A stretch of DNA of 63,898 bases, counting the filler, from Corallochytrium limacisporum Hawaii (lineage: Eukaryota > Protista > Pluriformea), in assembly GCA_002811645.1 (NCBI GenBank). It is 5 parts of 5 records of this genome, joined end to end, with 100 filler letters (N's around TTAATTAATTAA, not from the genome) between each part and the next. Parts side by side here need not be neighbours in the genome. Positions count along the whole stretch, not along the records: positions 53,857 to 62,724 come from PDIP01000169.1; positions 62,825 to 63,898 come from PDIP01000241.1; 3 more parts are not named here. One strand, 5' to 3'. Every line of letters starts with the position of its first letter. Positions within the stretch are counted from its first letter, which is position 1. The notes beneath the pieces were generated by a model. That model was not told where the DNA came from and ran no database searches. It saw nothing but the letters and a program-made list of their open reading frames with translations. The position numbers and the translations under genes are program-made. Below, in pieces: positions 53,757 through 63,898 of the stretch.

Positions 53757-54058
53757 NNNNNNNNNNNNNNNNNNNNNNNNNNNNNNNNNNNNNNNNNNNN
53801 TTAATTAATTAANNNNNNNNNNNNNNNNNNNNNNNNNNNNNNNNNNNNNNNNNNNNCCCCCCCCCGGGGGGGGGGGTGGGAGAGGGGCGGGGGAAAGGAC
53901 CCCGCAAACGGAAGGTGTTGCGCTGATCATCAACAGCGGCCCTCCGACTCCACACGCAAACCAGTGTCTATGCTGAACAAGAGACATGATAAATGATGAA
54001 TCATTTGTGACGCATGGCACGCTGGACAGTTTTTTTTGCGTGGCTGCCGAATCCGGAG

Positions 54059-54069
54059 AGGTATTTAAG
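54059..54069 (+). promoter_or_regulatory. AGGTATTTAAG TATA-like motif upstream of aerolysin-like gene
   Basis: Identical 11-mer upstream of knottin 2; 10/11 match upstream of knottin 1. Confidence 0.55.
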
Positions 54070-54183
54070 AGGATCCGGGCAAGGGATCACTGAGCCTACT
54101 CAACTATCAACTACCTTGGTATTCTAGAGAGCATTATCTGATCGTATACCCAAACACACCTACTGCACTCGTGATAGACACAG

Positions 54184-55743
54184 ATGAACATGAAGCTACG
54201 CATCCAAGATGTCTGTGTCTTCCTGATGGTCGGTGCCGATGTCCTGGCCGATCCAGTCATCTTTCCGCCACTATTTCCTCAGATGTGTCCCCAACCCAGG
54301 ATAACCCCAGACGTTGACATCTGGGAGGAGAGGGCCGACGAGATTAACTTCTTTGACTACTTGTACATTTTGTCTGGTACAGCAGATATGACCCAACTGT
54401 CAGAGTTCATCGCCGAGAAAAGTACTGACTTTGAGGACTACATGTGGCGGAGAAAGGGGAATCTGCAGTATCTAAGAAGTGGTACTGAAATCGATGAATG
54501 GAAATCTATGATGTGGACGCTTAATGTGCTCACAGGTCCTCTCCTCGCGGCACCCTACCACATTGACCGAACAAACAGCAACGCAGATGACTGGGACGCA
54601 TGGTGGAATGCTATCCATGATCTAACTCCCTATGACAGAACTTCCCCCGTCAATGAAACTGTCCGCTGCGATACTGATGCGCTACAGCAGGATTTCAAGC
54701 CCAAAGCAATTGGTTTTCCCGTTTACTTGCTGCAGTTTCTGTTCAGTAACATTCCCACAACGCTCCCGCTACTGACTGTCACTGAACAGAAATCTGATAC
54801 AATCACGGGCCGTGTATGGGATGTGTCTACCGAGGACTTGCAAAGTGAACCAAAGAAGGCGATCCAGAACACAGGTTTTCTGTGCGACACGATCTCGTAT
54901 ACGTACGATAAAAAAGTCTCTGAATCAACCACTACAACCACTCAAACGCAGGTCTCTGACAGTCTTACGGTCAGCACAGAAATGTCCTACAGTACGAAAG
55001 CTAGCGCAAAATTTGGGGGCATTGTTGATGTTGAGGCTACCTCCACGATCAAGACCGGTTTATCCAATACCTTTGCCACGGCCTATACAACGACAAGCTC
55101 CGGAACCACAAGCACAACAATTTCCCAGACGTGGGACTCCACCATCCATATCCCACCACTGTCCGTTGTGAACGTTACTGTCTATACGGCGCAGACACAA
55201 GCCGACGTGTTCATTGCCGGAGACGTGGTCTACAACGAGGATAGAGTTGGCGTTAAGGCCTGGATCCAGGGCGATTTCATTGACATCCCCACCGGGGAGG
55301 TTTCGGACCTTATCAAGAGGGGTGACTTTGCCGCACTGAAGGACATTAAAGAAGCAGCCAAATTGGCTATGAAAGTCATTGGTGCAGACTGGAGCGATCT
55401 CTTCCTGGACTCGCTGATCTCTCCCACCGTCTCAGGCAAAGCGACGTCGACTGCGGGCGAGGCCCTCAAGATAAAGGTAAACTTTTGTGACAAGGACAGT
55501 ATATCCGGCGATATCTGTGATGAGTTCCTTGCTGAGCAGTTCCCTCCTACGATTCGAGAATGTCCGCCTTCAGGCAAGCGCCGTTCTGATGATGATGGGG
55601 ATTTCTTTGGTAGTGCTTCCTTTGACCCGGAGAATGTTCTGGCCGCCGTAGATTATGACCGTGACTGCTTTCATCTTGAACCCACAGCCGGTGAAACTCG
55701 CACATGGAATATTATTCCCAAACCAGGTTGTACTTCCAATTGA
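54184..55743 (+). CDS. Secreted aerolysin/ETX-MTX2-family beta-pore-forming-like protein
   Basis: Signal peptide; Ser/Thr-rich strands flanking an amphipathic hairpin (VSTEMSYSTKASAKFGGIVDVEATSTIKTGLSNTF); WDSTIHIPPLSVVNVTVYT motif; KRR followed by an acidic C-terminal segment. Confidence 0.75.
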   Translation: MNMKLRIQDVCVFLMVGADVLADPVIFPPLFPQMCPQPRITPDVDIWEERADEINFFDYLYILSGTADMTQLSEFIAEKSTDFEDYMWRRKGNLQYLRSGTEIDEWKSMMWTLNVLTGPLLAAPYHIDRTNSNADDWDAWWNAIHDLTPYDRTSPVNETVRCDTDALQQDFKPKAIGFPVYLLQFLFSNIPTTLPLLTVTEQKSDTITGRVWDVSTEDLQSEPKKAIQNTGFLCDTISYTYDKKVSESTTTTTQTQVSDSLTVSTEMSYSTKASAKFGGIVDVEATSTIKTGLSNTFATAYTTTSSGTTSTTISQTWDSTIHIPPLSVVNVTVYTAQTQADVFIAGDVVYNEDRVGVKAWIQGDFIDIPTGEVSDLIKRGDFAALKDIKEAAKLAMKVIGADWSDLFLDSLISPTVSGKATSTAGEALKIKVNFCDKDSISGDICDEFLAEQFPPTIRECPPSGKRRSDDDGDFFGSASFDPENVLAAVDYDRDCFHLEPTAGETRTWNIIPKPGCTSN

Positions 55744-56027
55744 CACTCTCCCTTGTCTGTCATAGTTGACGAACTGAACCATCAAGGATGTCAGACTCCA
55801 GCCACAAATAGTGGCTAGCTCAACGACCTCTAGTCTGGGTTGTTCAAATCATGAGCACACAGCCAGTGAACCGCAACATGATCATATAGCGCTTTGAGAC
55901 TTTTATGCATTTAATGAATTCTTCTCAAACTAACTAGTGAGTTTCTGGACGACGAAGATGTGTTCCTCGTCCAATGGTAGGAAAAGCATTGCGCTCTACG
56001 TTCCCATTCGGAGTGGAATGTTTCCAT

Positions 56028-56300
56028 CTACCAGTCGCATGTGCCGACCGGGTATGCATCGTGGCAACTTCCAAAGCAGCAGTCGGAGTTTTTGGAGCAA
56101 GGGGCACTGGGAATCATGCTGCATCCACCGACGGGCTCTTGTCCGAAGATCCTGACGTAGGCAGCATGGTAGTCAGCATTGGCCTGCGCGGTGACCTCGG
56201 CAGCGGCATCCTTGAACTGAGCAACCTGGTCCTGCTCAGTGGGCGCGCCCATTGCACCAGCAATGGCCAGGGCACAAACAAAAAGGATGGAGGACTTCAT
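56028..56300 (-). CDS. Secreted cystine-knot (ICK, C-C-CC-C-C) prepropeptide 1
   Basis: MKSSILFVCALAIAGAMGAP signal, acidic propeptide, C-x7-C-x5-CC-x3-C-x8-C; paralog at 60959-61216. Confidence 0.88.
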   Translation of the reverse strand: MKSSILFVCALAIAGAMGAPTEQDQVAQFKDAAAEVTAQANADYHAAYVRIFGQEPVGGCSMIPSAPCSKNSDCCFGSCHDAYPVGTCDW

Positions 56301-56388
56301 TTTGGGTGAGAAATTTGATTTGAATTCTTTTTTCAACACTTGATGGAAAGCTTAGAGATCACGCTCCGGTCGGTTCAAAACGATCTGA

Positions 56389-56399
56389 CTTAAGTACCT
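56389..56399 (-). promoter_or_regulatory. AGGTACTTAAG TATA-like motif upstream of knottin 1
   Basis: About 89 nt upstream of ATG 56300. Confidence 0.5.
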
Positions 56400-56939
56400 C
56401 TGCTGCGTGATCTTAGACCAAAGGTCCTTTCAAAAGATTATGCTTACTTTAGATCGGTTCATCAAATTTGTCACGTAGTTTCTCACGTCTTGTTAGATGT
56501 CCCCGCATCACATCGTACTGATTGAGCAATGAAAGACGTCTGTGCCCCGAAACAAAGAATCGAAGTGTGTGATGCGATCCAGTCATATCCGATCGTTTCT
56601 CCAAGCTCTCAGGTGAATGAGGGCCTGGTGGGCATGGTTTCGATCGCAAACGGGGCTATCCTGCCGTTTCTTAAGATGGTCTTACAACAGGGCAAACAAG
56701 CTGGCGTAGCTTCCGAAACCTGTCTTTCAACTCTGAAGTGGGGTAAAGGTCCACCGATCCAAAGGCAACTTCGCGTCAGAGCCTCCTTTTTCCTTTCCCC
56801 TCCGCCTCCAACCCCCTCCCCCGGGGGGGGGGGACATTCCCTCCCGGCCGGCCTGCCGGACGCTTTGAAACCGTGCCCAGAGGGGCCTCCATCGCCCTTT
56901 GTCACAGGACGCTTCCTCCTTCCTTGTTACCATCTTCAT

Positions 56940-57167
56940 TCTTGGGCTTTGTTGTCCACCGGTGAGTGGCAAGTGGGGTTTCTTCGAGGAGTACACACGA
57001 GGATCCACCTTAGAGAGGGTCCACACACCTTCGTTATCGAACAACAAGGACATCTTGGGCTTTGTTGTCCACCGGTGAGTGGCAAGTGGGGTTTCTTCGA
57101 GGAGTACACACGAGGATCCACCGTAGAGAGGGTCCACACACCTTCGTTATCGAACAACGAGGACATC
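56940..57167. repeat. 113-bp tandem duplication (2 near-identical copies)
   Basis: GTTGTCCACCGGTGAGTGGCAAG at 56951 and 57064. Confidence 0.92.
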
Positions 57168-57389
57168 TATCACAAACCACCCGTTTCGGTAAACATACAA
57201 ATGAATAATACTACGGCCCCACCCTCGCAGAGACGCAGTTCTCCCCAGTATGAGAATAGAGTAAGTCTTGGGTCCATCTATTTATGTCCGCCTAAACAAC
57301 TGCGCGATGTTAAGTGTAATTTGTGCTATGCCCAAGAACACAAATTCAGCAGTTTGCTTTTGGACCATTTCCTGTGAAATGTTGATTAT

Positions 57390-60300
57390 CTAACTTGATA
57401 AAATCCTGGGGATTGGAAGAGAGTCGTGGTAGTTCATGAAGGGAAGAGGGGGGGGATCAAGGGTGCGGTGAATAATTCGATTCGATAGTTGCAGGCTAGA
57501 AATTTATAGGGTTGTGTACCTTCTTGCTTAGCTCCGCTCTTGTGACTTTCCATGATGTTTGCTCTGATCCGATGGAGACTGCTGCAGGTGAAAGATCATT
57601 GCGCTAAAATAAGAAACCCTGTTGAGGAGGACGTTGGGTTCGACAACAATGCAACTTGTTCGCAACAAACACTGGATGGAACAATGCATTCCAAGATTGC
57701 TCAATTTAGGGAGTCAGCGTGGCAGGTAAGCGCAGCATACCCACTACTGCCGCCACTCCCCTATTTTCATACCTTGTATGGTAGGAGGATTACAAAGCAT
57801 CTGGGAAACAACTCCAGAAGAAATGGGGCTTGCACGAAATAGACACTATCAAGGCCTGTGATTCATCTACCGTGAAAGAAAAGGGGGTTTGAGATATGCC
57901 AGGGAATGGGAATCTGGCGTAGAGACGAGAGGAAAGTTACAGAACTGTCGAATTGTTGAACCCACTGGAAGAATGTTCAGCTAAACTGAGCATAGAAGTA
58001 CTACCGGCTTTCGCAGCCCTGGATACGACAGAGGAAGCACACTGATGACGGCTTGTATTCTATTTCGTATGTGTTTGTGTGCGTGTGGGTGATTGTGAGA
58101 GTTGAGTGGCACCATATGCGCACAATGTCACGAGTTCACTGTGATCTCAGGGGGAGGCGGTGATATTTCGTTAACATTGACTGTGACGGCCCTACACGAT
58201 AAATAAACAATAAAGATCCACTGTTGTTGCAGGGGTCGCGTCACCTGTCTGGATTGTTGCCGACAGCTCTATTTCCACAGGCAGGGCGCCCCCCCCCCCC
58301 GGGGGGGGAATCGGGGGCCAATTTTCAGCCTCAACCTCGCCCCCTTCCTTCTCCTGTTCTTGCGTGCAAAGCACTTCGCCTTCCAGAGGTTTGGGGAGCA
58401 GCTTGGGTAATTATTGATCAATTTCCTTCAGGTCCCCGGGCCGAGCCCCTGCGGTGTTTGCATATTCTCTCCGCGTATCCCCAGGGGGATATTCTGCGGT
58501 GGAACCCGGTCTAATTTTTATGTTAATTGGAGATGGGGGCTTAATAAAAACAAGACCGAACTCTTCGTCGGGGGCCTATTTAAAAGCGATTTGTAATTAC
58601 CAAAAGGAGGCTAAAGAAAAGAAACCCAAGGGCACCGGAAATCGCGAATGAGCATGACCTATCTAAACACCTCAACCCAACGTATCCATTCTTCATGTTC
58701 CTCATGAGACCTAGCACTTAAAGGACGCTTCGGAGTATACAGGGTTCGTGTTTAGAGTGGCTTACACAGGGAGAGAGGAACAGCACCCTGGTTCAATCTC
58801 AGCTCCGCGTCGGACCCGCCTTTCCTGTCTACCACGTCATCCCTCCCTGCCGGTCTGCTGGGGCCCCTTTGTCACTGTGTGCGGCAGAGGACCACCATCC
58901 CACTTCCCTTATGATCTTTCCTCGTTGCTTCATACTACTACTAGCCTTATCTTCGTTCTTGTTCGTCGTTTCCCACCGGAGAGGGGCGATCTCAACTTTC
59001 TTGGGAGTCGTTGTCCACCACTGTGTGGCGGTTGAGGTACTCGCCCCCAGAACAGAAGTAATTTCCAAGTACCATGCCTTCGTCGAAAACGGCAATATGC
59101 AAGGTCAAGTACAAAAGGAAGACACGGTCCGTACGGACTTGTGTCCTAGTATTAGTTCCATCGCTCCCTTTGTCGGTACCGGCGCGATCTAAGGAACCGC
59201 AAATACACTGTTTTCGGCCCCACTTCCAGTGAAAAGGTCCCTGCCAGCTTGATAACAATCCATAACGATAGAAGTGGGCACACGGGAAACGGGTCGTGGT
59301 GGTTCATGAAGAGAGGATCACGGGGGTTGCGAAATGTAAAGGGTCAGGTGAATAGTATTCATGGAGCTGTCAATTCTATGGTTGGTGAATAGGTTGTGCC
59401 GTTTTCGGTGATGTGCCTGGCTTGCTTTATTCCGTTGTTGTGACTGTCCATAGTGTTGTTATAATCCGAGGGAAATGCAGTTCCGCTATCGGTATAGGAC
59501 TGCGGTACTTTAAACCCCCCCATCTGAGGGATGCCTACAATCTATAGATACTTTTCAACCAATGCTGGGCTGCCCGCATTCCAAAGTTAAAAAAAAGAAT
59601 TGGGCGGTCCAAAAATTGGGAACCTAAAATACCTGCGCCCTCGTACTATTGAGAAAGCGACTGAAAATGACACGTAATATAGCTTAGAATGTCTAGATCA
59701 AAACGAACTCACTGATGTTACCAAATTGACAAGCATGGTGACCCTGTGGTTAACTTCAGACTTGCACGGCAGGGATGATGGAGCAGTTTGGAGAACCCCA
59801 ACAGAAGAAATGAGCGAGCTCGAATGGAGGAAATATTATGAAGGACTGTGGAAAAAGGGAACCGTGGGGGATTTGCGAAGGGGGGAAGAAACGGAAGGAA
59901 GTGGGGGAAGGTGTCGCAAATGTGAAACCACCATTAAAGCAATCAGCTTAACCAGGCATTTGGATTGCAATGCCCTGGGAAAGACTGAGGAAACGCACAG
60001 GGTGGAGGGCGCTCTTGTGCGAAATTTTCCTGTGAGTGAGTGTGAGAGTGACTGGTGCACCACGTCACGAGTATAATGTGATCTCAGGTGGACACTGCGC
60101 TAGTATCGCCGTACGTCGCACTGACTGTGTGCGTTTTCCCGAACACTGTCAATGTGCGTTGGGTCGGAAGCGGACTCTTCCCAAAAGCGGCGTGCCGAAA
60201 CCAAAAAGAAATGTAACACGGTGAAAAGCGCCAAGGTTTTGCTGTGGTCGCGTCACTTGAACGTCGGGATTGCGAGGCCAGTTTAGTACCCCACCAAAGT

Positions 60301-60710
60301 GGGAACGAGGGGCCTATTTTCCCAGTGGATAGAGTCCCCCCCGGGGGGGGGGGCGCTAAAACGAAACTCTTCAATGAGGGCCCATTTTAAAATCGATACT
60401 CAACGTATTTTTTCGCTTTTCCTTGCCGGGTTTGCCGGTTGCCCCTTCCAATATTTTGCTCTGGACGGAGATGCTGTGCGAGAAGGCAAGGCAACTGAAC
60501 GGGAGTCTATTTTAAAAGTGACTTGTAACTACCAAAAGGAGGTTGGAGAAACCAAAGGGGGCGGACATGGCGAACACGAGTATGACCTACCTCCTCAACC
60601 CAAAAGTATGCATCATACCCAGGTATTCCTAATGAGAAATAGCACTTAGACACGCTTCGGAGAATGGGGGGTTCGTAGTTAGACTGAACTACACAGAAAC
60701 AGAGGTACGG
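57390..60710. repeat. Diverged direct duplication, about 57390-58780 vs 59250-60710
   Basis: Shared blocks GTCGTGGT.GTTCATGAAG, GTCACGAGT...TGTGATCTCAGG, a CnGn core, TTGTAA.TACCAAAAGGAGG, ATGACCTA...CCTCAACCCAA. Confidence 0.75.
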
Positions 60711-60958
60711 TAGTCATAGTCCTCATGGAATAGGAAATGCATTCAAATACAAAACTGTTCTGTGTGGTACATGACCATATTGTGCCTGCTAAAAGACTAG
60801 ATCTTTATGATGATGTTGAAGTAACATCTGATCGAGGATAAAATGGGACAGGATGTTTTCCATCTATATTTGAGGAGTCCGACTAGCCCCATACCTTCTT
60901 TCCTGAACCAGCTACGCGGCAAATGAATGCACCATCATTCAAACATGATCCGTACGGT

Positions 60959-61216
60959 TTAGTACTTGCAGGTGCCAACTGGGAAACCCCTGTCACAGGT
61001 CAGAGGCCAGCAGCAGTCAGAGTTGCTGCTGCAGGGCCAGCCGTAAACAGGGCTGCATGCAGCAACAGCTTCCTTCTGGCTGTCGGGAAGGAGCTTCACG
61101 TAGGTCTCAATGAATTGCTCAGAAGCTTCCTTGAGCTGAGCCAAATCATCCTGCTCAGAGGGAGCAGCCATAGCGCCAACAATGGCAAGGGCACAAACAA
61201 CGACGAAGGACTTCAT
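60959..61216 (-). CDS. Secreted cystine-knot (ICK) prepropeptide 2
   Basis: MKSFVVVCALAIVGAMAAP signal, acidic propeptide, C-x7-C-x5-CC-x4-C-x8-C. Confidence 0.88.
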   Translation of the reverse strand: MKSFVVVCALAIVGAMAAPSEQDDLAQLKEASEQFIETYVKLLPDSQKEAVAACSPVYGWPCSSNSDCCWPLTCDRGFPVGTCKY

Positions 61217-61296
61217 TTTGATAATTGAACTGAACTGATGAACAGACTTGAATATTGGAGAATCTGATCACTTGCTAATGAATCTGATCGCTCGCG

Positions 61297-61307
61297 CTTA
61301 AATACCT
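61297..61307 (-). promoter_or_regulatory. AGGTATTTAAG TATA-like motif upstream of knottin 2
   Basis: About 81 nt upstream of ATG 61216. Confidence 0.55.
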
Positions 61308-63898
61308 TCCCCTGCAAACACTGATGAAAGAATTACTAAGCTTATGAGAATCAGTTTTAAGCCCAGAAACACCATGTTCCCACGAACTTGTGTACACTGT
61401 GCATTTAATGACATCCCAGGCCGCTGTATCGCAGATTCCATCTCGGACATGATGTCCTCATCCGCCTTAAATGGAGCCAGCTGTTGTGCCGTAGATTTGA
61501 TTATAACGACCATATGTGGCTAAATTGAAGTTAAAGATACCACAAGGACAATGACATCCTTTTCTGTGGTTAGTGTAGATTCCACCGCCTGGCAATATAC
61601 CGTCTCCTGTTCTTCTAGTTACCCTTCCCGTGGTCTGAGGAGCTACCTGCGGGAGGCAGCCCTCGGCGGCCCTTCTCCCCGCCCGCTTCTCCCCGAACAG
61701 AAAAGAAGTGGGAAGGGGAGAGGGGGGAAAGGGGAAGACCCCTATCCATGGTAGTCAAGGGTCACTCCGTTGCTTATTGGCGCAGTGGTGTGCGTAGTTG
61801 GACTCCATCCCGTCCAACCCAACCTCGAGGTGGTTTCACAACAAGCTTTATGGTGTACATTCATCAATTGTATAATCCTGCTAGAGCGACAAGACAATTA
61901 AGTAACATTTCTGAGACACCGGACTGTATGATGTAACTTAACTGGTTCCGGGCAGCCATAGCGGTGTATTCGTTCTGGTCACAATGGATGCTGAGAGTGA
62001 CGCCATCAGACACTTGTGGAAACTCTCCTGGAATTTCCTGTACATCCTTCCTCGTTGTATGGTCTTTTGACGTATGGTCAACTGTTGAACAATCGAAGGA
62101 GGGACACCATGGACCACTGACCAGATAACAACAGCTTCAACGGTGATGGGCAGGTCTCCCGTGCCAATGCGTGGGGATGAGAAACAAAGATGGACTGCCT
62201 TTGATTACATGACATTGTTAGATGCGACGGTACTGGCTGGCCCGAAGGTGATAAAGACGAGAAGGACAGGGAGGTTGCCGGCTTTGGGCACATGGGGCGC
62301 GTGTGTGAAAACTTGGGTATTGCAACCCCGTCAGGAGAATATTGCACAGACGCGCAAAGGAGATGGACATACAGTCGTAATCACGATCCCACTTAGTAAT
62401 GTTCTTGCCCGTGGCTGTAGCCTCTTGGTCTCAGCCATGTGACAACGCGGTCCGGGTGCTTCCCTTCGTTCTTGCCATCCCTGTCTTCCCAAATGTAACA
62501 TGGTGCTACTGTGGGTAAGATAAAACGAATGTGCCTGACGAATCCCTTCATCCTCAATTCAATAGCTACTGCGTTGTGTTTTGGAACGTTGGTGCGCCCG
62601 TTAAAATTAGTCACAATTTGAAACTCTCTCCGGGCCTAATACTTTCATACTACCAACCTCTGTTCAATAAAAAAGTGCATAATTTACATTATGGTTTGAA
62701 AGCTTCGTTTGAATCTTATAAAATNNNNNNNNNNNNNNNNNNNNNNNNNNNNNNNNNNNNNNNNNNNNTTAATTAATTAANNNNNNNNNNNNNNNNNNNN
62801 NNNNNNNNNNNNNNNNNNNNNNNNCTCCCCCCCTTCTCTCCGCCCCCGCCCCCGCACAGGCAGAGCACAGATTCTCCAGGCCCGCGCTGCACATTTGGAC
62901 CTCGGAGAGAAAAAGGGGGGGTCTTTGGGTAGAAGAAGGCTAAGGGACCGCCGCTGTGGTCGAGTACTTTACCGCTGGGGGTGGGGCTTTGAAAGGAAGG
63001 AAGGGGGGAGGAGGGGAAAGGAGTGCAAAACGCCAGTTGGCGCGCTGCCTTCCGCGTGTGTGGCTTGGGGGTTTCTTTTTACTTTCTCTCTTTTCTTTGG
63101 GGCCGATTTTTTCTTCATCAACGCTCCGTTCCTTCGCCCNNNNNNNNNNNNNNNNNNNGGGGCTTTGAAAGGAAGGAAGGGGGGAGGAGGGGAAAGGAGT
63201 GCAAAACGCCAGTTGGCGCGCTGCCTTCCGCGTGTGTGGCTTGGGGTTTTCTTTTTACTTTCTCTCTTTTCTTTGGGGCCGATTTTTTCTTCATCAACGC
63301 TCCGTTCCTTCGCCCTGCCGCTGGCCGGCGAGATCGCCTTGATTTTGTACTGGACACCGGTGCTCACCTTTGGGGGCCGCCGGAAACAACGAGGCCAGGA
63401 CCTCGTTCCGTATCTCGGCTTGCCCAACATTACCACACACACACACTCTTGAACGTGCGCGTCTTCATCCTCAGCTACGTGTAGCTGCTTGTACACGTCA
63501 ACTCACACAGGAGCTTCAACGGAAAAGCGTCAAGGGTGTTAAGGGATCGCAAAATGATTGCTCGGCTCCGAGACACACCAACAGCCACGGGGCTGCTAAG
63601 CAAACAATCAATATTGGAGGAACAAAGCGAACGACGGGCGGTACCGATCGGCGCGCGCGCCAGCTGCAGCACGGAAATGAATCGACACCCGTCGGGCGCT
63701 AGGTACAGATACCGGTCTCTTGCCACTGCCATAGCCAAATGTCTTTTCTTCAGCACACAGGCGCCCCGAGACACTAAGAGCCCTTTACATTGCACAGTGG
63801 AGAAAAGCTTTGGCACCAGCAGTGTAGGATCGCGCGAAGGCTTGTACAAACCCGCCGTACGAGCTCCATACCCACCTACATTCTCTGGCGCAATATCT

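Follow-up and report, generated by a model that had tools for sequence, protein, structure and literature searches.

We examined a small scaffold of Corallochytrium limacisporum (PDIP01000169.1; 8,868 bases without N) and found that it carries three credible genes, here called A, K1 and K2, whose products all look secreted: A encodes a predicted pore-forming protein of the aerolysin/ETX-MTX2 type, and K1 and K2 encode small paralogous prepropeptides that end in a domain of the inhibitor cystine knot (ICK) type. The scaffold fills positions 53857-62724 of the window, by which we mean the whole 63,898-nucleotide stretch of joined genome parts that was analysed, and coordinates throughout are those of the window. 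C. limacisporum is a free-living marine unicellular holozoan whose 7,535-gene genome was assembled from axenic culture (PMC5560861). We read the locus, with a probability of roughly 0.6, as three independently transcribed secreted effector-type genes lying in a gene-poor, duplication-prone region.

The locus, with a G+C content of 44-56%, holds 53 open reading frames (ORFs) of at least 50 residues, among which A, K1 and K2 stand out (Table 1); the proteins of all three are present as EukProt proteome entries. The ORF of A runs from 54184 to 55743 on the plus strand (519 residues), and its annotated product starts at the third codon, at 54190. With their stop codons, K1 spans 56028-56300 and K2 60959-61216, both on the minus strand; in the ORF list K1 reaches as far as a GTG at 56339. 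A and K1 point towards each other, tail to tail, with 284 bp from stop codon to stop codon, and K2 lies 4.66 kb past the start codon of K1 and is oriented like it. These measurements agree with the initial annotation of this DNA, which had placed three secreted-protein genes on the 8.9-kb piece, with about 285 bp between A and K1 and about 4.7 kb on to K2.

Little else in the locus resembles a gene. Eight other ORFs of 89-282 residues had no Pfam match, a scan for transfer RNAs and Rfam families found none, and tblastn with 35 family proteins revealed no further copy, pseudogene or relic within 53857-62724. The local duplications noted in the initial annotation are real but modest: a near-exact 113-bp tandem duplication in two copies (56940-57168) and a set of scattered matches of 73-83% that link 58120-58769 with 60057-60696, some 1.9 kb away. 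Both fall in the stretch devoid of genes that separates K1 from K2, and the two knottin genes also resemble each other in their 5' coding parts.

The decisive evidence for the nature of A is structural. An AlphaFold2 model built on the family alignment (mean predicted local distance difference test score (pLDDT) of 83; predicted template modelling score (pTM) of 0.77) gave 35 Foldseek matches in the PDB at E ≤ 0.001; the matches listed are all aerolysin-family proteins, led by Cry51Aa (6e-9) and followed by Cry23Aa, Sip, Mpp75Aa, epsilon toxin, parasporin-2, aerolysin and Dln1, with lamprey immune protein just past that limit (E of 2.4e-3). Exhaustive structural alignment of the model to 48,161 chains returned a top ten made up entirely of aerolysin-family structures (Z of 8.3-5.3), and Cry23Aa is the second-best structural match. 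The matches also include 6lh8, the structure of the Bombina aerolysin-like protein. In the ESM Atlas, A matched biomphalysin-like proteins, natterins, jacalin-aerolysin proteins, bacterial aerolysins and ETX/MTX2 clusters. The template modelling (TM) scores against aerolysin-family matches are low (0.2-0.4), as is usual for this elongated, hinge-prone fold, and in part because A has about 140 extra N-terminal residues. Together, these searches support for A a predicted aerolysin fold, in which long antiparallel, twisted β-strands make up an elongated core, and bear out an ETX/MTX2-like identity that had been proposed from a sequence resemblance below threshold.

That resemblance amounts to 13.6 bits against Pfam ETX_MTX2 (PF03318; cut-off 22, E of 0.06); neither this family nor Aerolysin (PF01117) is matched at threshold, and a sequence search of the PDB with A gave no significant match. 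An exhaustive HMMER (phmmer) search of 1.84 billion representatives with A returned 30 proteins: 29 from C. limacisporum, query included, and one cyanobacterial. The 29 are clusters at 50% identity from the EukProt proteome, names of the form Clim_evm... being taken to mean C. limacisporum, and the paralogues are mutually 21-46% identical. Nothing else was found outside C. limacisporum in that search, and the single exception is an ETX/MTX2 family pore-forming toxin of Laspinema (WP_261251303.1, P0033; E of 5.6e-5), which passes the Pfam cut-offs for ETX_MTX2, Aerolysin and Jacalin and is 30% identical to the A family over 145 residues. This sole outside relative, a cyanobacterial toxin combining jacalin and ETX/MTX2, is a possible hint of a bacterial origin of the A core. 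Strong ETX_MTX2, Aerolysin and Jacalin matches that had seemed to come from Corallochytrium paralogues were rejected, as all three belong to the included Laspinema sequence; when the family alignment was scanned against Pfam, no Corallochytrium paralogue outscored it. A profile built from 22 Corallochytrium paralogues gave weak matches to Cry51Aa1, parasporin-2, monalysin, C. perfringens enterotoxin and a natterin-like protein (E of 0.009-0.55), those to Cry51Aa1 and parasporin-2 lying at 0.009-0.015.

Several hallmarks of the fold are visible in A and recur in its family. The predicted signal peptide has a counterpart, judged by eye, in nearly all full-length paralogues. The family-specific α-helical N-terminal part is conserved across paralogues and had no relative in Pfam and no look-alike in an Atlas feature search; searches with the whole model are dominated by the β-core. 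Within the core, hydrophobic and polar side chains alternate along residues 271-300, on either side of a K-T-G turn, and Ser/Thr make up 53% of the preceding stretch (241-270) and 50% of the following one (301-330). Both this candidate membrane-insertion hairpin, amphipathic at the level of sequence, and the Ser/Thr pattern around it are kept in paralogues. The model has a single internal disordered loop, residues 463-478, with pLDDT below 50; RR or KRR occurs in this linker in 8 of the 14 closer paralogues, as it does in A. By analogy with proaerolysin and epsilon protoxin, we infer that A may be activated by removal of its C-terminal piece.

The helical parts of the family also occur in another setting. 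Clim_evm1s30 (P0007; 1060 residues) has a reprolysin/M12B metalloprotease domain at residues 148-341, followed by three repeats whose unit consists of the A-family helical N-terminal part and a helical segment matching A at about 345-413, without the β pore-forming core. This layout suggests that the helical parts form an autonomous module, or else it may be a mis-merged array of fragments.

K1 and K2 are 43-49% identical and share one layout: a hydrophobic leader with small residues at -3/-1, an acidic Ala-rich pro-region and a C-terminal six-Cys domain. In both, the cysteines are arranged as C-C-CC-C-C over some 30-40 residues; an alignment of the three full-length sequences (K1, K2 and Clim_evm1s6, P0006) shows all six to be invariant, along with the motifs N-S-D-C-C and P-V-G-x-C. 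Word-based searches found four knottins, with relatives in the same species only. The closest relative of K1 is Clim_evm1s6 (81% identity) and that of K2 is Clim_evm1s3, whose 58 residues are 86% identical to the first 57 of K2; both come from the same proteome. The ratio of non-synonymous to synonymous substitution rates (dN/dS) between K1 and K2 is about 0.38 overall, with dS near 1; it is 0.35 for the leader and pro part and 0.45 for the mature part. By this measure the two genes are under purifying selection, with the mature peptide evolving somewhat faster.

No curated Pfam toxin family (Conotoxin, Toxin_12, Omega-toxin or similar) matched K1 or K2 at threshold, the best scores being 13-14 bits against cut-offs of 21-27: Toxin_12 scored 13.1-13.8 bits with K2 (cut-off 21) and Conotoxin_I2 13-14 bits with K1 and P0006 (cut-off 27). 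Atlas feature scores (0.79-0.82) were below the useful level, and sequence matches in the PDB (E of 0.14-10) were almost all to spider, sponge (asteropsin) and sea-anemone knottins. An AlphaFold2 model of the mature domain (pLDDT 73) gave five Foldseek matches, every one an ICK toxin (TM of 0.31-0.60, E of 4-9); when it was aligned to the 48,161 chains, eight reached Z ≥ 2 and seven of these were ICK toxins, with a root-mean-square deviation of 1.5-3.5 Å over 27-33 residues. Low absolute scores are expected here because the peptide has only about 40 residues. On this model we accept K1 and K2 as secreted peptides of the ICK type. Of the earlier description as conotoxin-like knottins, the ICK-type secreted precursor stands, on the Cys framework and the model, but the conotoxin label was dropped as too specific: no such family reached threshold, and spider toxin families figure just as much among the weak matches.

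Evidence bearing on transcription comes from run X1, a 2015 data set, probably of RNA, with the same species label, which contains 0.20 of the words sampled from 53857-62724. Over 55290-61289 it yielded a single contig of 1772 nucleotides (nt) at depth 54, whose bases 1-603 correspond to 55892-55290 with zero differences; the remaining 1169 nt would reach about 54121. Since 1772/8868 is 0.20, this contig over A accounts for every word found, and because it starts and ends just outside the ORF of A, with silent flanks, it looks like a transcript. Neither K1 nor K2, nor anything else from 55893-61289, is represented in this one data set of contigs, and contigs cannot rank expression, just as a single condition is weak evidence of silence. 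RNA sequencing of C. limacisporum from a 2015 study exists (PMC5560861); if run X1 is RNA, we read A as being transcribed in culture and K1 and K2 as leaving no detectable trace in these data.

Each of the three genes has a TATA-like element of its own. The 11-mer AGGTAYTTAAG occurs in three exact copies in the locus, on the coding strand and 81-121 nt upstream of the ATGs of A, K1 and K2; with up to one mismatch, four copies are observed against 0.19 expected. From its sequence the 11-mer looks like a plain TATA-type element, and the three upstream regions, when compared, are otherwise unalike. The one-mismatch copy, at 59624-59634 on the minus strand, lies 101 nt upstream of a 54-residue ORF (59359-59523, minus strand) that has no leader peptide, no Cys and no Pfam match, and whose similarity to K1, K2 and A is not above that of shuffled controls; this candidate fourth gene was treated as chance.

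Table 1 Features of the A/K1/K2 locus in window coordinates, with the basis of each assignment
Feature	Position	Strand	Basis or detail
Gene A, predicted secreted aerolysin/ETX-MTX2-type β-pore-forming protein, 517 residues (P0001), intronless	54190..55743	+	ORF, fold searches
Gene K1, prepropeptide, 90 residues (P0005): signal peptide, pro-region, C-terminal six-Cys domain	56031..56300	-	ORF, alignment
Gene K2, prepropeptide, 85 residues (P0034), K1 paralogue	60962..61216	-	ORF, alignment
A, predicted signal peptide, residues 1-20	54190..54249	+	By inspection: hydrophobic stretch, small residues at -3/-1
A, family-specific α-helical N-terminal part, about residues 40-160	54307..54669	+	Helices 42-158, pLDDT 80-97
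A, aerolysin-type β-core, residues 179-434; long strands 204-227, 233-251, 305-321, 325-347, 413-434	54724..55491	+	AlphaFold2 model, structure searches
A, candidate membrane-insertion hairpin, residues 271-300	55000..55089	+	Alternating hydrophobic/polar residues
A, dibasic KRR, residues 463-465, at start of disordered loop; candidate proteolytic activation site	55576..55584	+	pLDDT, paralogues
A, C-terminal small Cys-containing β-module, residues 479-517; missing in more distant paralogues	55624..55740	+	AlphaFold2 model, alignment
K1, ICK-type domain C-x7-C-x5-CC-x3-C-x8-C, residues 60-90	56031..56123	-	Alignment, model searches
K2, ICK-type domain C-x7-C-x5-CC-x4-C-x8-C, residues 54-85	60962..61057	-	Alignment, sequence matches
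TATA-like 11-mer AGGTATTTAAG, 121 nt before annotated A ATG	54059..54069	+	Exact AGGTAYTTAAG copy
TATA-like 11-mer AGGTACTTAAG, 89 nt upstream of K1 ATG	56389..56399	-	Exact AGGTAYTTAAG copy
TATA-like 11-mer AGGTATTTAAG, 81 nt upstream of K2 ATG	61297..61307	-	Exact AGGTAYTTAAG copy
Putative A transcript; 5' untranslated region about 69 nt, 3' untranslated region about 149 nt	54121..55892	+	1772-nt run X1 contig

A second linked pair, known from gene names and protein sequences alone, consists of the knottin gene Clim_evm1s6 and of Clim_evm2s6 (P0004), adjacent by gene number. The last 116 of the 409 residues of Clim_evm2s6 are 84-88% identical to A residues 264-379, a piece of its hairpin and core region. 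The gene model is chimeric: its approximately 290 N-terminal residues are unrelated to A, have no Pfam match and show, by eye, a D-x-x-D-x-D-x-E motif as in family-18 glycoside hydrolases. Clim_evm2s6 is probably a truncated copy of A merged with a neighbour. This pair is 81-88% identical to the A/K1 pair and both members have diverged about equally, as from one segmental duplication; it is therefore not independent evidence of linkage and, as the sequences suggest, is probably a duplicate of the A/K1 pair. Neither the A family nor the knottin family was found in other species, bar the Laspinema toxin, and their linkage is known in C. limacisporum only.

By gene number, members of the A family form tandem groups: 5, 6, 7 and 11 on scaffold 10, 82 and 83 on scaffold 33, and 85 and 86 on scaffold 108. 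The EVM gene index of 30 A-family members is bimodal, with 23 at 11 or below, seven at 82-262 and none between, and the other two knottins each carry index 1, one on scaffold 3 and one on scaffold 6. Should these indices reflect position, both families would lie close to the ends of scaffolds, possibly in subtelomeric DNA. A common location in terminal regions prone to duplication would in that case account for the genes being neighbours without functional coupling.

The initial annotation had gone further and proposed a co-regulated killing or defence module. We consider it quite unlikely that A and the knottins make up a single co-regulated weapon of two components, in which the pore former would deliver the peptides, bind them or act in synergy with them, after the model of the aerolysin-like protein and trefoil factor complex of Bombina skin or of the binary toxin Cry23Aa/Cry37Aa. 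The idea draws on the 284 bp by which A adjoins K1, on the identical 11-mer 81-121 nt upstream of all three start codons, on the second pair that is adjacent by gene names (Clim_evm1s6, 81% identical to K1; Clim_evm2s6, with its 84-88% piece of A) and on the rank of Cry23Aa, which is part of a binary toxin, as second among the structural matches to A. However, A and K1 are convergent, which excludes a shared promoter, and each needs its own; the 11-mer looks like an ordinary TATA box; run X1, with the A contig at depth 54, contains zero K1 or K2 words; the A family numbers about 30 clusters and the knottins found only four, meaning that most A paralogues are without a known knottin neighbour; and the second pair is equally diverged, as one segmental duplication would leave it. 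Convergence, separate TATA-like elements, run X1, family sizes and the origin of the second pair thus leave the proposed module without support; that the three genes function as a module is unproven, and the scant expression evidence does not favour it.

Two other explanations concern what the genes do, or whether all of them do anything. A could be an aerolysin-fold protein that is no weapon and has an endogenous, non-lytic or self-directed role, for instance in cell-wall or membrane remodelling at coenocyte cellularisation, in vesicle traffic or in nutrient uptake, the knottins being signalling peptides or protease inhibitors. Endogenous roles have been given to animal aerolysin-fold proteins, the Bombina protein among them, and the helical N-terminal part of A is unlike the known lectin and receptor-binding domains. 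A is also seemingly transcribed in the 2015 data set, from a probably axenic culture and so without prey or competitor (culture conditions, PMC5560861). We nevertheless judge an endogenous role unlikely: large, fast-diverging, tandem secreted families (21-46% identity) are typical of conflict-driven effectors rather than of housekeeping proteins, and the A family is absent from every other organism sampled. It is very unlikely that K1 and K2 are gene copies that have fallen silent or are decaying, or small ORFs wrongly called as genes, in a locus reduced to one expressed pore-former gene and relics. Although no K1 or K2 sequence occurs in run X1 and both lie in a 4.7-kb stretch with no other genes, among repeats and C/G palindromes, both frames are intact with leader peptides, K1, K2 and P0006 keep all six cysteines, dN/dS is about 0.38 at a dS near 1, the TATA-like element is kept at the same distance as in the expressed gene A, and one culture condition says little about inducible genes.

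Several observations weigh against our own reading of three independently transcribed secreted effector-type genes. A falls below the curated Pfam threshold, and its assignment accordingly depends on predicted structure and on weak or indirect sequence links; AlphaFold2 draws its putative insertion hairpin as helices; and the structure matches of the knottins are all statistically weak (E of 4-9, Z ≤ 2.6). The RNA status of run X1 is a guess from its record. Coupling could be indicated by the same exact 11-mer upstream of all three genes and by the second knottin/A-like pair that seems to exist.

For three independent effector-type genes we propose the following mechanism, which for A is modelled on what is known of aerolysin and epsilon toxin. 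A would be a β-pore-forming protein in pro-form, secreted through its signal peptide, that reaches its target membrane, probably through the family-specific helical N-terminal part. Cleavage at the exposed dibasic loop would release the C-terminal module and so activate the protein, which would then oligomerise, with the Ser/Thr-flanked amphipathic hairpin (271-300) contributing to a β-barrel pore. The C-terminal 31-32 residues of K1 and K2 would fold as ICK peptides and act extracellularly on targets of their own, whether channel, enzyme or membrane. The three genes would lie together since both families live in gene-poor, duplication-prone parts of the genome, and would not constitute a single regulated unit. 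Their role would likely be defence or competition against grazers or other microbes, or the lysis of other cells for nutrients. The analysis itself shows the gene structures, the organism, the fold assignments, the family sizes and a transcript-sized contig over A; secretion, activation, pore formation, targets and ecological role belong to the proposed mechanism.

Among characterized systems, ETX/MTX2-type toxins (C. perfringens epsilon toxin; Cry51Aa, Cry23Aa, Mpp75Aa and parasporin-2 of Bacillus/Brevibacillus) have the same elongated β-core as is predicted for A (Z of 7.3-8.3 over 190-246 residues); they have Ser/Thr-rich strands around an amphipathic hairpin, as A has by sequence, and a secreted pro-form, to which A would correspond through its predicted leader and candidate C-terminal cleavage site. 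Identity to A is, however, only 10-16%, below the Pfam cut-off. In place of the small head domain of the bacterial toxins, A has the helical N-terminal part of about 140 residues and a helical insert at 371-408, and its family, unlike theirs, is eukaryotic, confined to a single species and about 30 clusters strong.

SaroL-1 of the choanoflagellate Salpingoeca rosetta (PDB 7qe3) is a secreted aerolysin-type pore-forming lectin from a unicellular holozoan (PMC9468336). Its β-core aligns with that of A (Z of 4.7 over 148 residues), with no detectable sequence relationship; SaroL-1 targets a glycolipid via a β-trefoil lectin domain, whereas A has the helical N-terminal part and no detectable lectin domain. 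The initial annotation knew of no such locus in a unicellular eukaryote. For an aerolysin-type pore former alone SaroL-1 is a precedent; for this organism, our literature searches found no paper naming Corallochytrium together with aerolysin. The distribution of aerolysin-like genes over the eukaryotes, due in part to transfer from bacteria, is well documented, and recurrence of such transfer has been argued (PMC3424411, PMC3110756). Those of animals (zebrafish Dln1, lamprey immune protein/natterin-like, the Bombina protein and molluscan biomphalysins) encode proteins that share the core fold of A (Z of 5.3-6.9) and are, like the A family, lineage-specific expansions in eukaryotes; they differ in carrying jacalin, DM9 or βγ-crystallin targeting domains, and orthology to A was not detected.

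K1 and K2 share the signal/pro/mature layout of ICK prepropeptide toxins (spider Toxin_12/huwentoxin-type, omega-atracotoxins and O-superfamily conotoxins; sponge asteropsins), along with the same six-Cys framework and typical loop lengths. The predicted knottin fold can be superposed on ICK peptides of spiders, scorpions and sea anemones with deviations of 1.5-2.5 Å over 27-31 residues, and the weak sequence and feature matches are almost only to ICK toxin families. Unlike those toxins, K1 and K2 belong to a single-celled organism without a venom apparatus and match no curated family at threshold. Two-component systems (Cry23Aa/Cry37Aa; the Bombina aerolysin-like protein with a trefoil factor) pair an aerolysin-fold protein with a small partner, and Cry23Aa is among the best matches to A; the small proteins here are predicted ICK peptides, in contrast to the C2-like or trefoil partners of those systems.

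Aerolysin-type pore formers and cystine-knot peptides are among the scaffolds most often reused in animal venoms and immunity. Both appear as secreted, duplicated families in Corallochytrium, which is among the earliest-branching unicellular relatives of animals, indicating that the raw material is present in single-celled holozoans, either inherited or acquired by gene transfer. What is new is a species-restricted aerolysin-type expansion with a helical N-terminal part for which Pfam and the feature search gave no relative, and the presence of ICK-type prepropeptides in a single-celled animal relative. A large pore-former family of one species, with a helical part for which no relative was found, could reveal a new way of targeting membranes. 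It would be a long shot that a unicellular relative of animals has a two-component secreted weapon, made of a pore former with a new helical targeting part and adjacent ICK peptides and duplicated as a unit; if it does, both venom scaffolds and their combined use would predate animals and venom glands. Should the genes act together, which is unproven, they would be a new kind of binary system; should they not, they are a useful catalogue entry for the secreted arsenal of a model protist that is now transfectable.

The locus also contains perfect palindromes of the form C(5-12)G(8-11), four in 8.9 kb (53857-53876, 56818-56833, 58289-58308 and 60336-60353), where 0.03 matches to C6G6 would be expected. 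A comparison of their flanks found no longer element in common. One of the four forms the very first bases of the scaffold, suggesting that assemblies may break at C/G palindromes.

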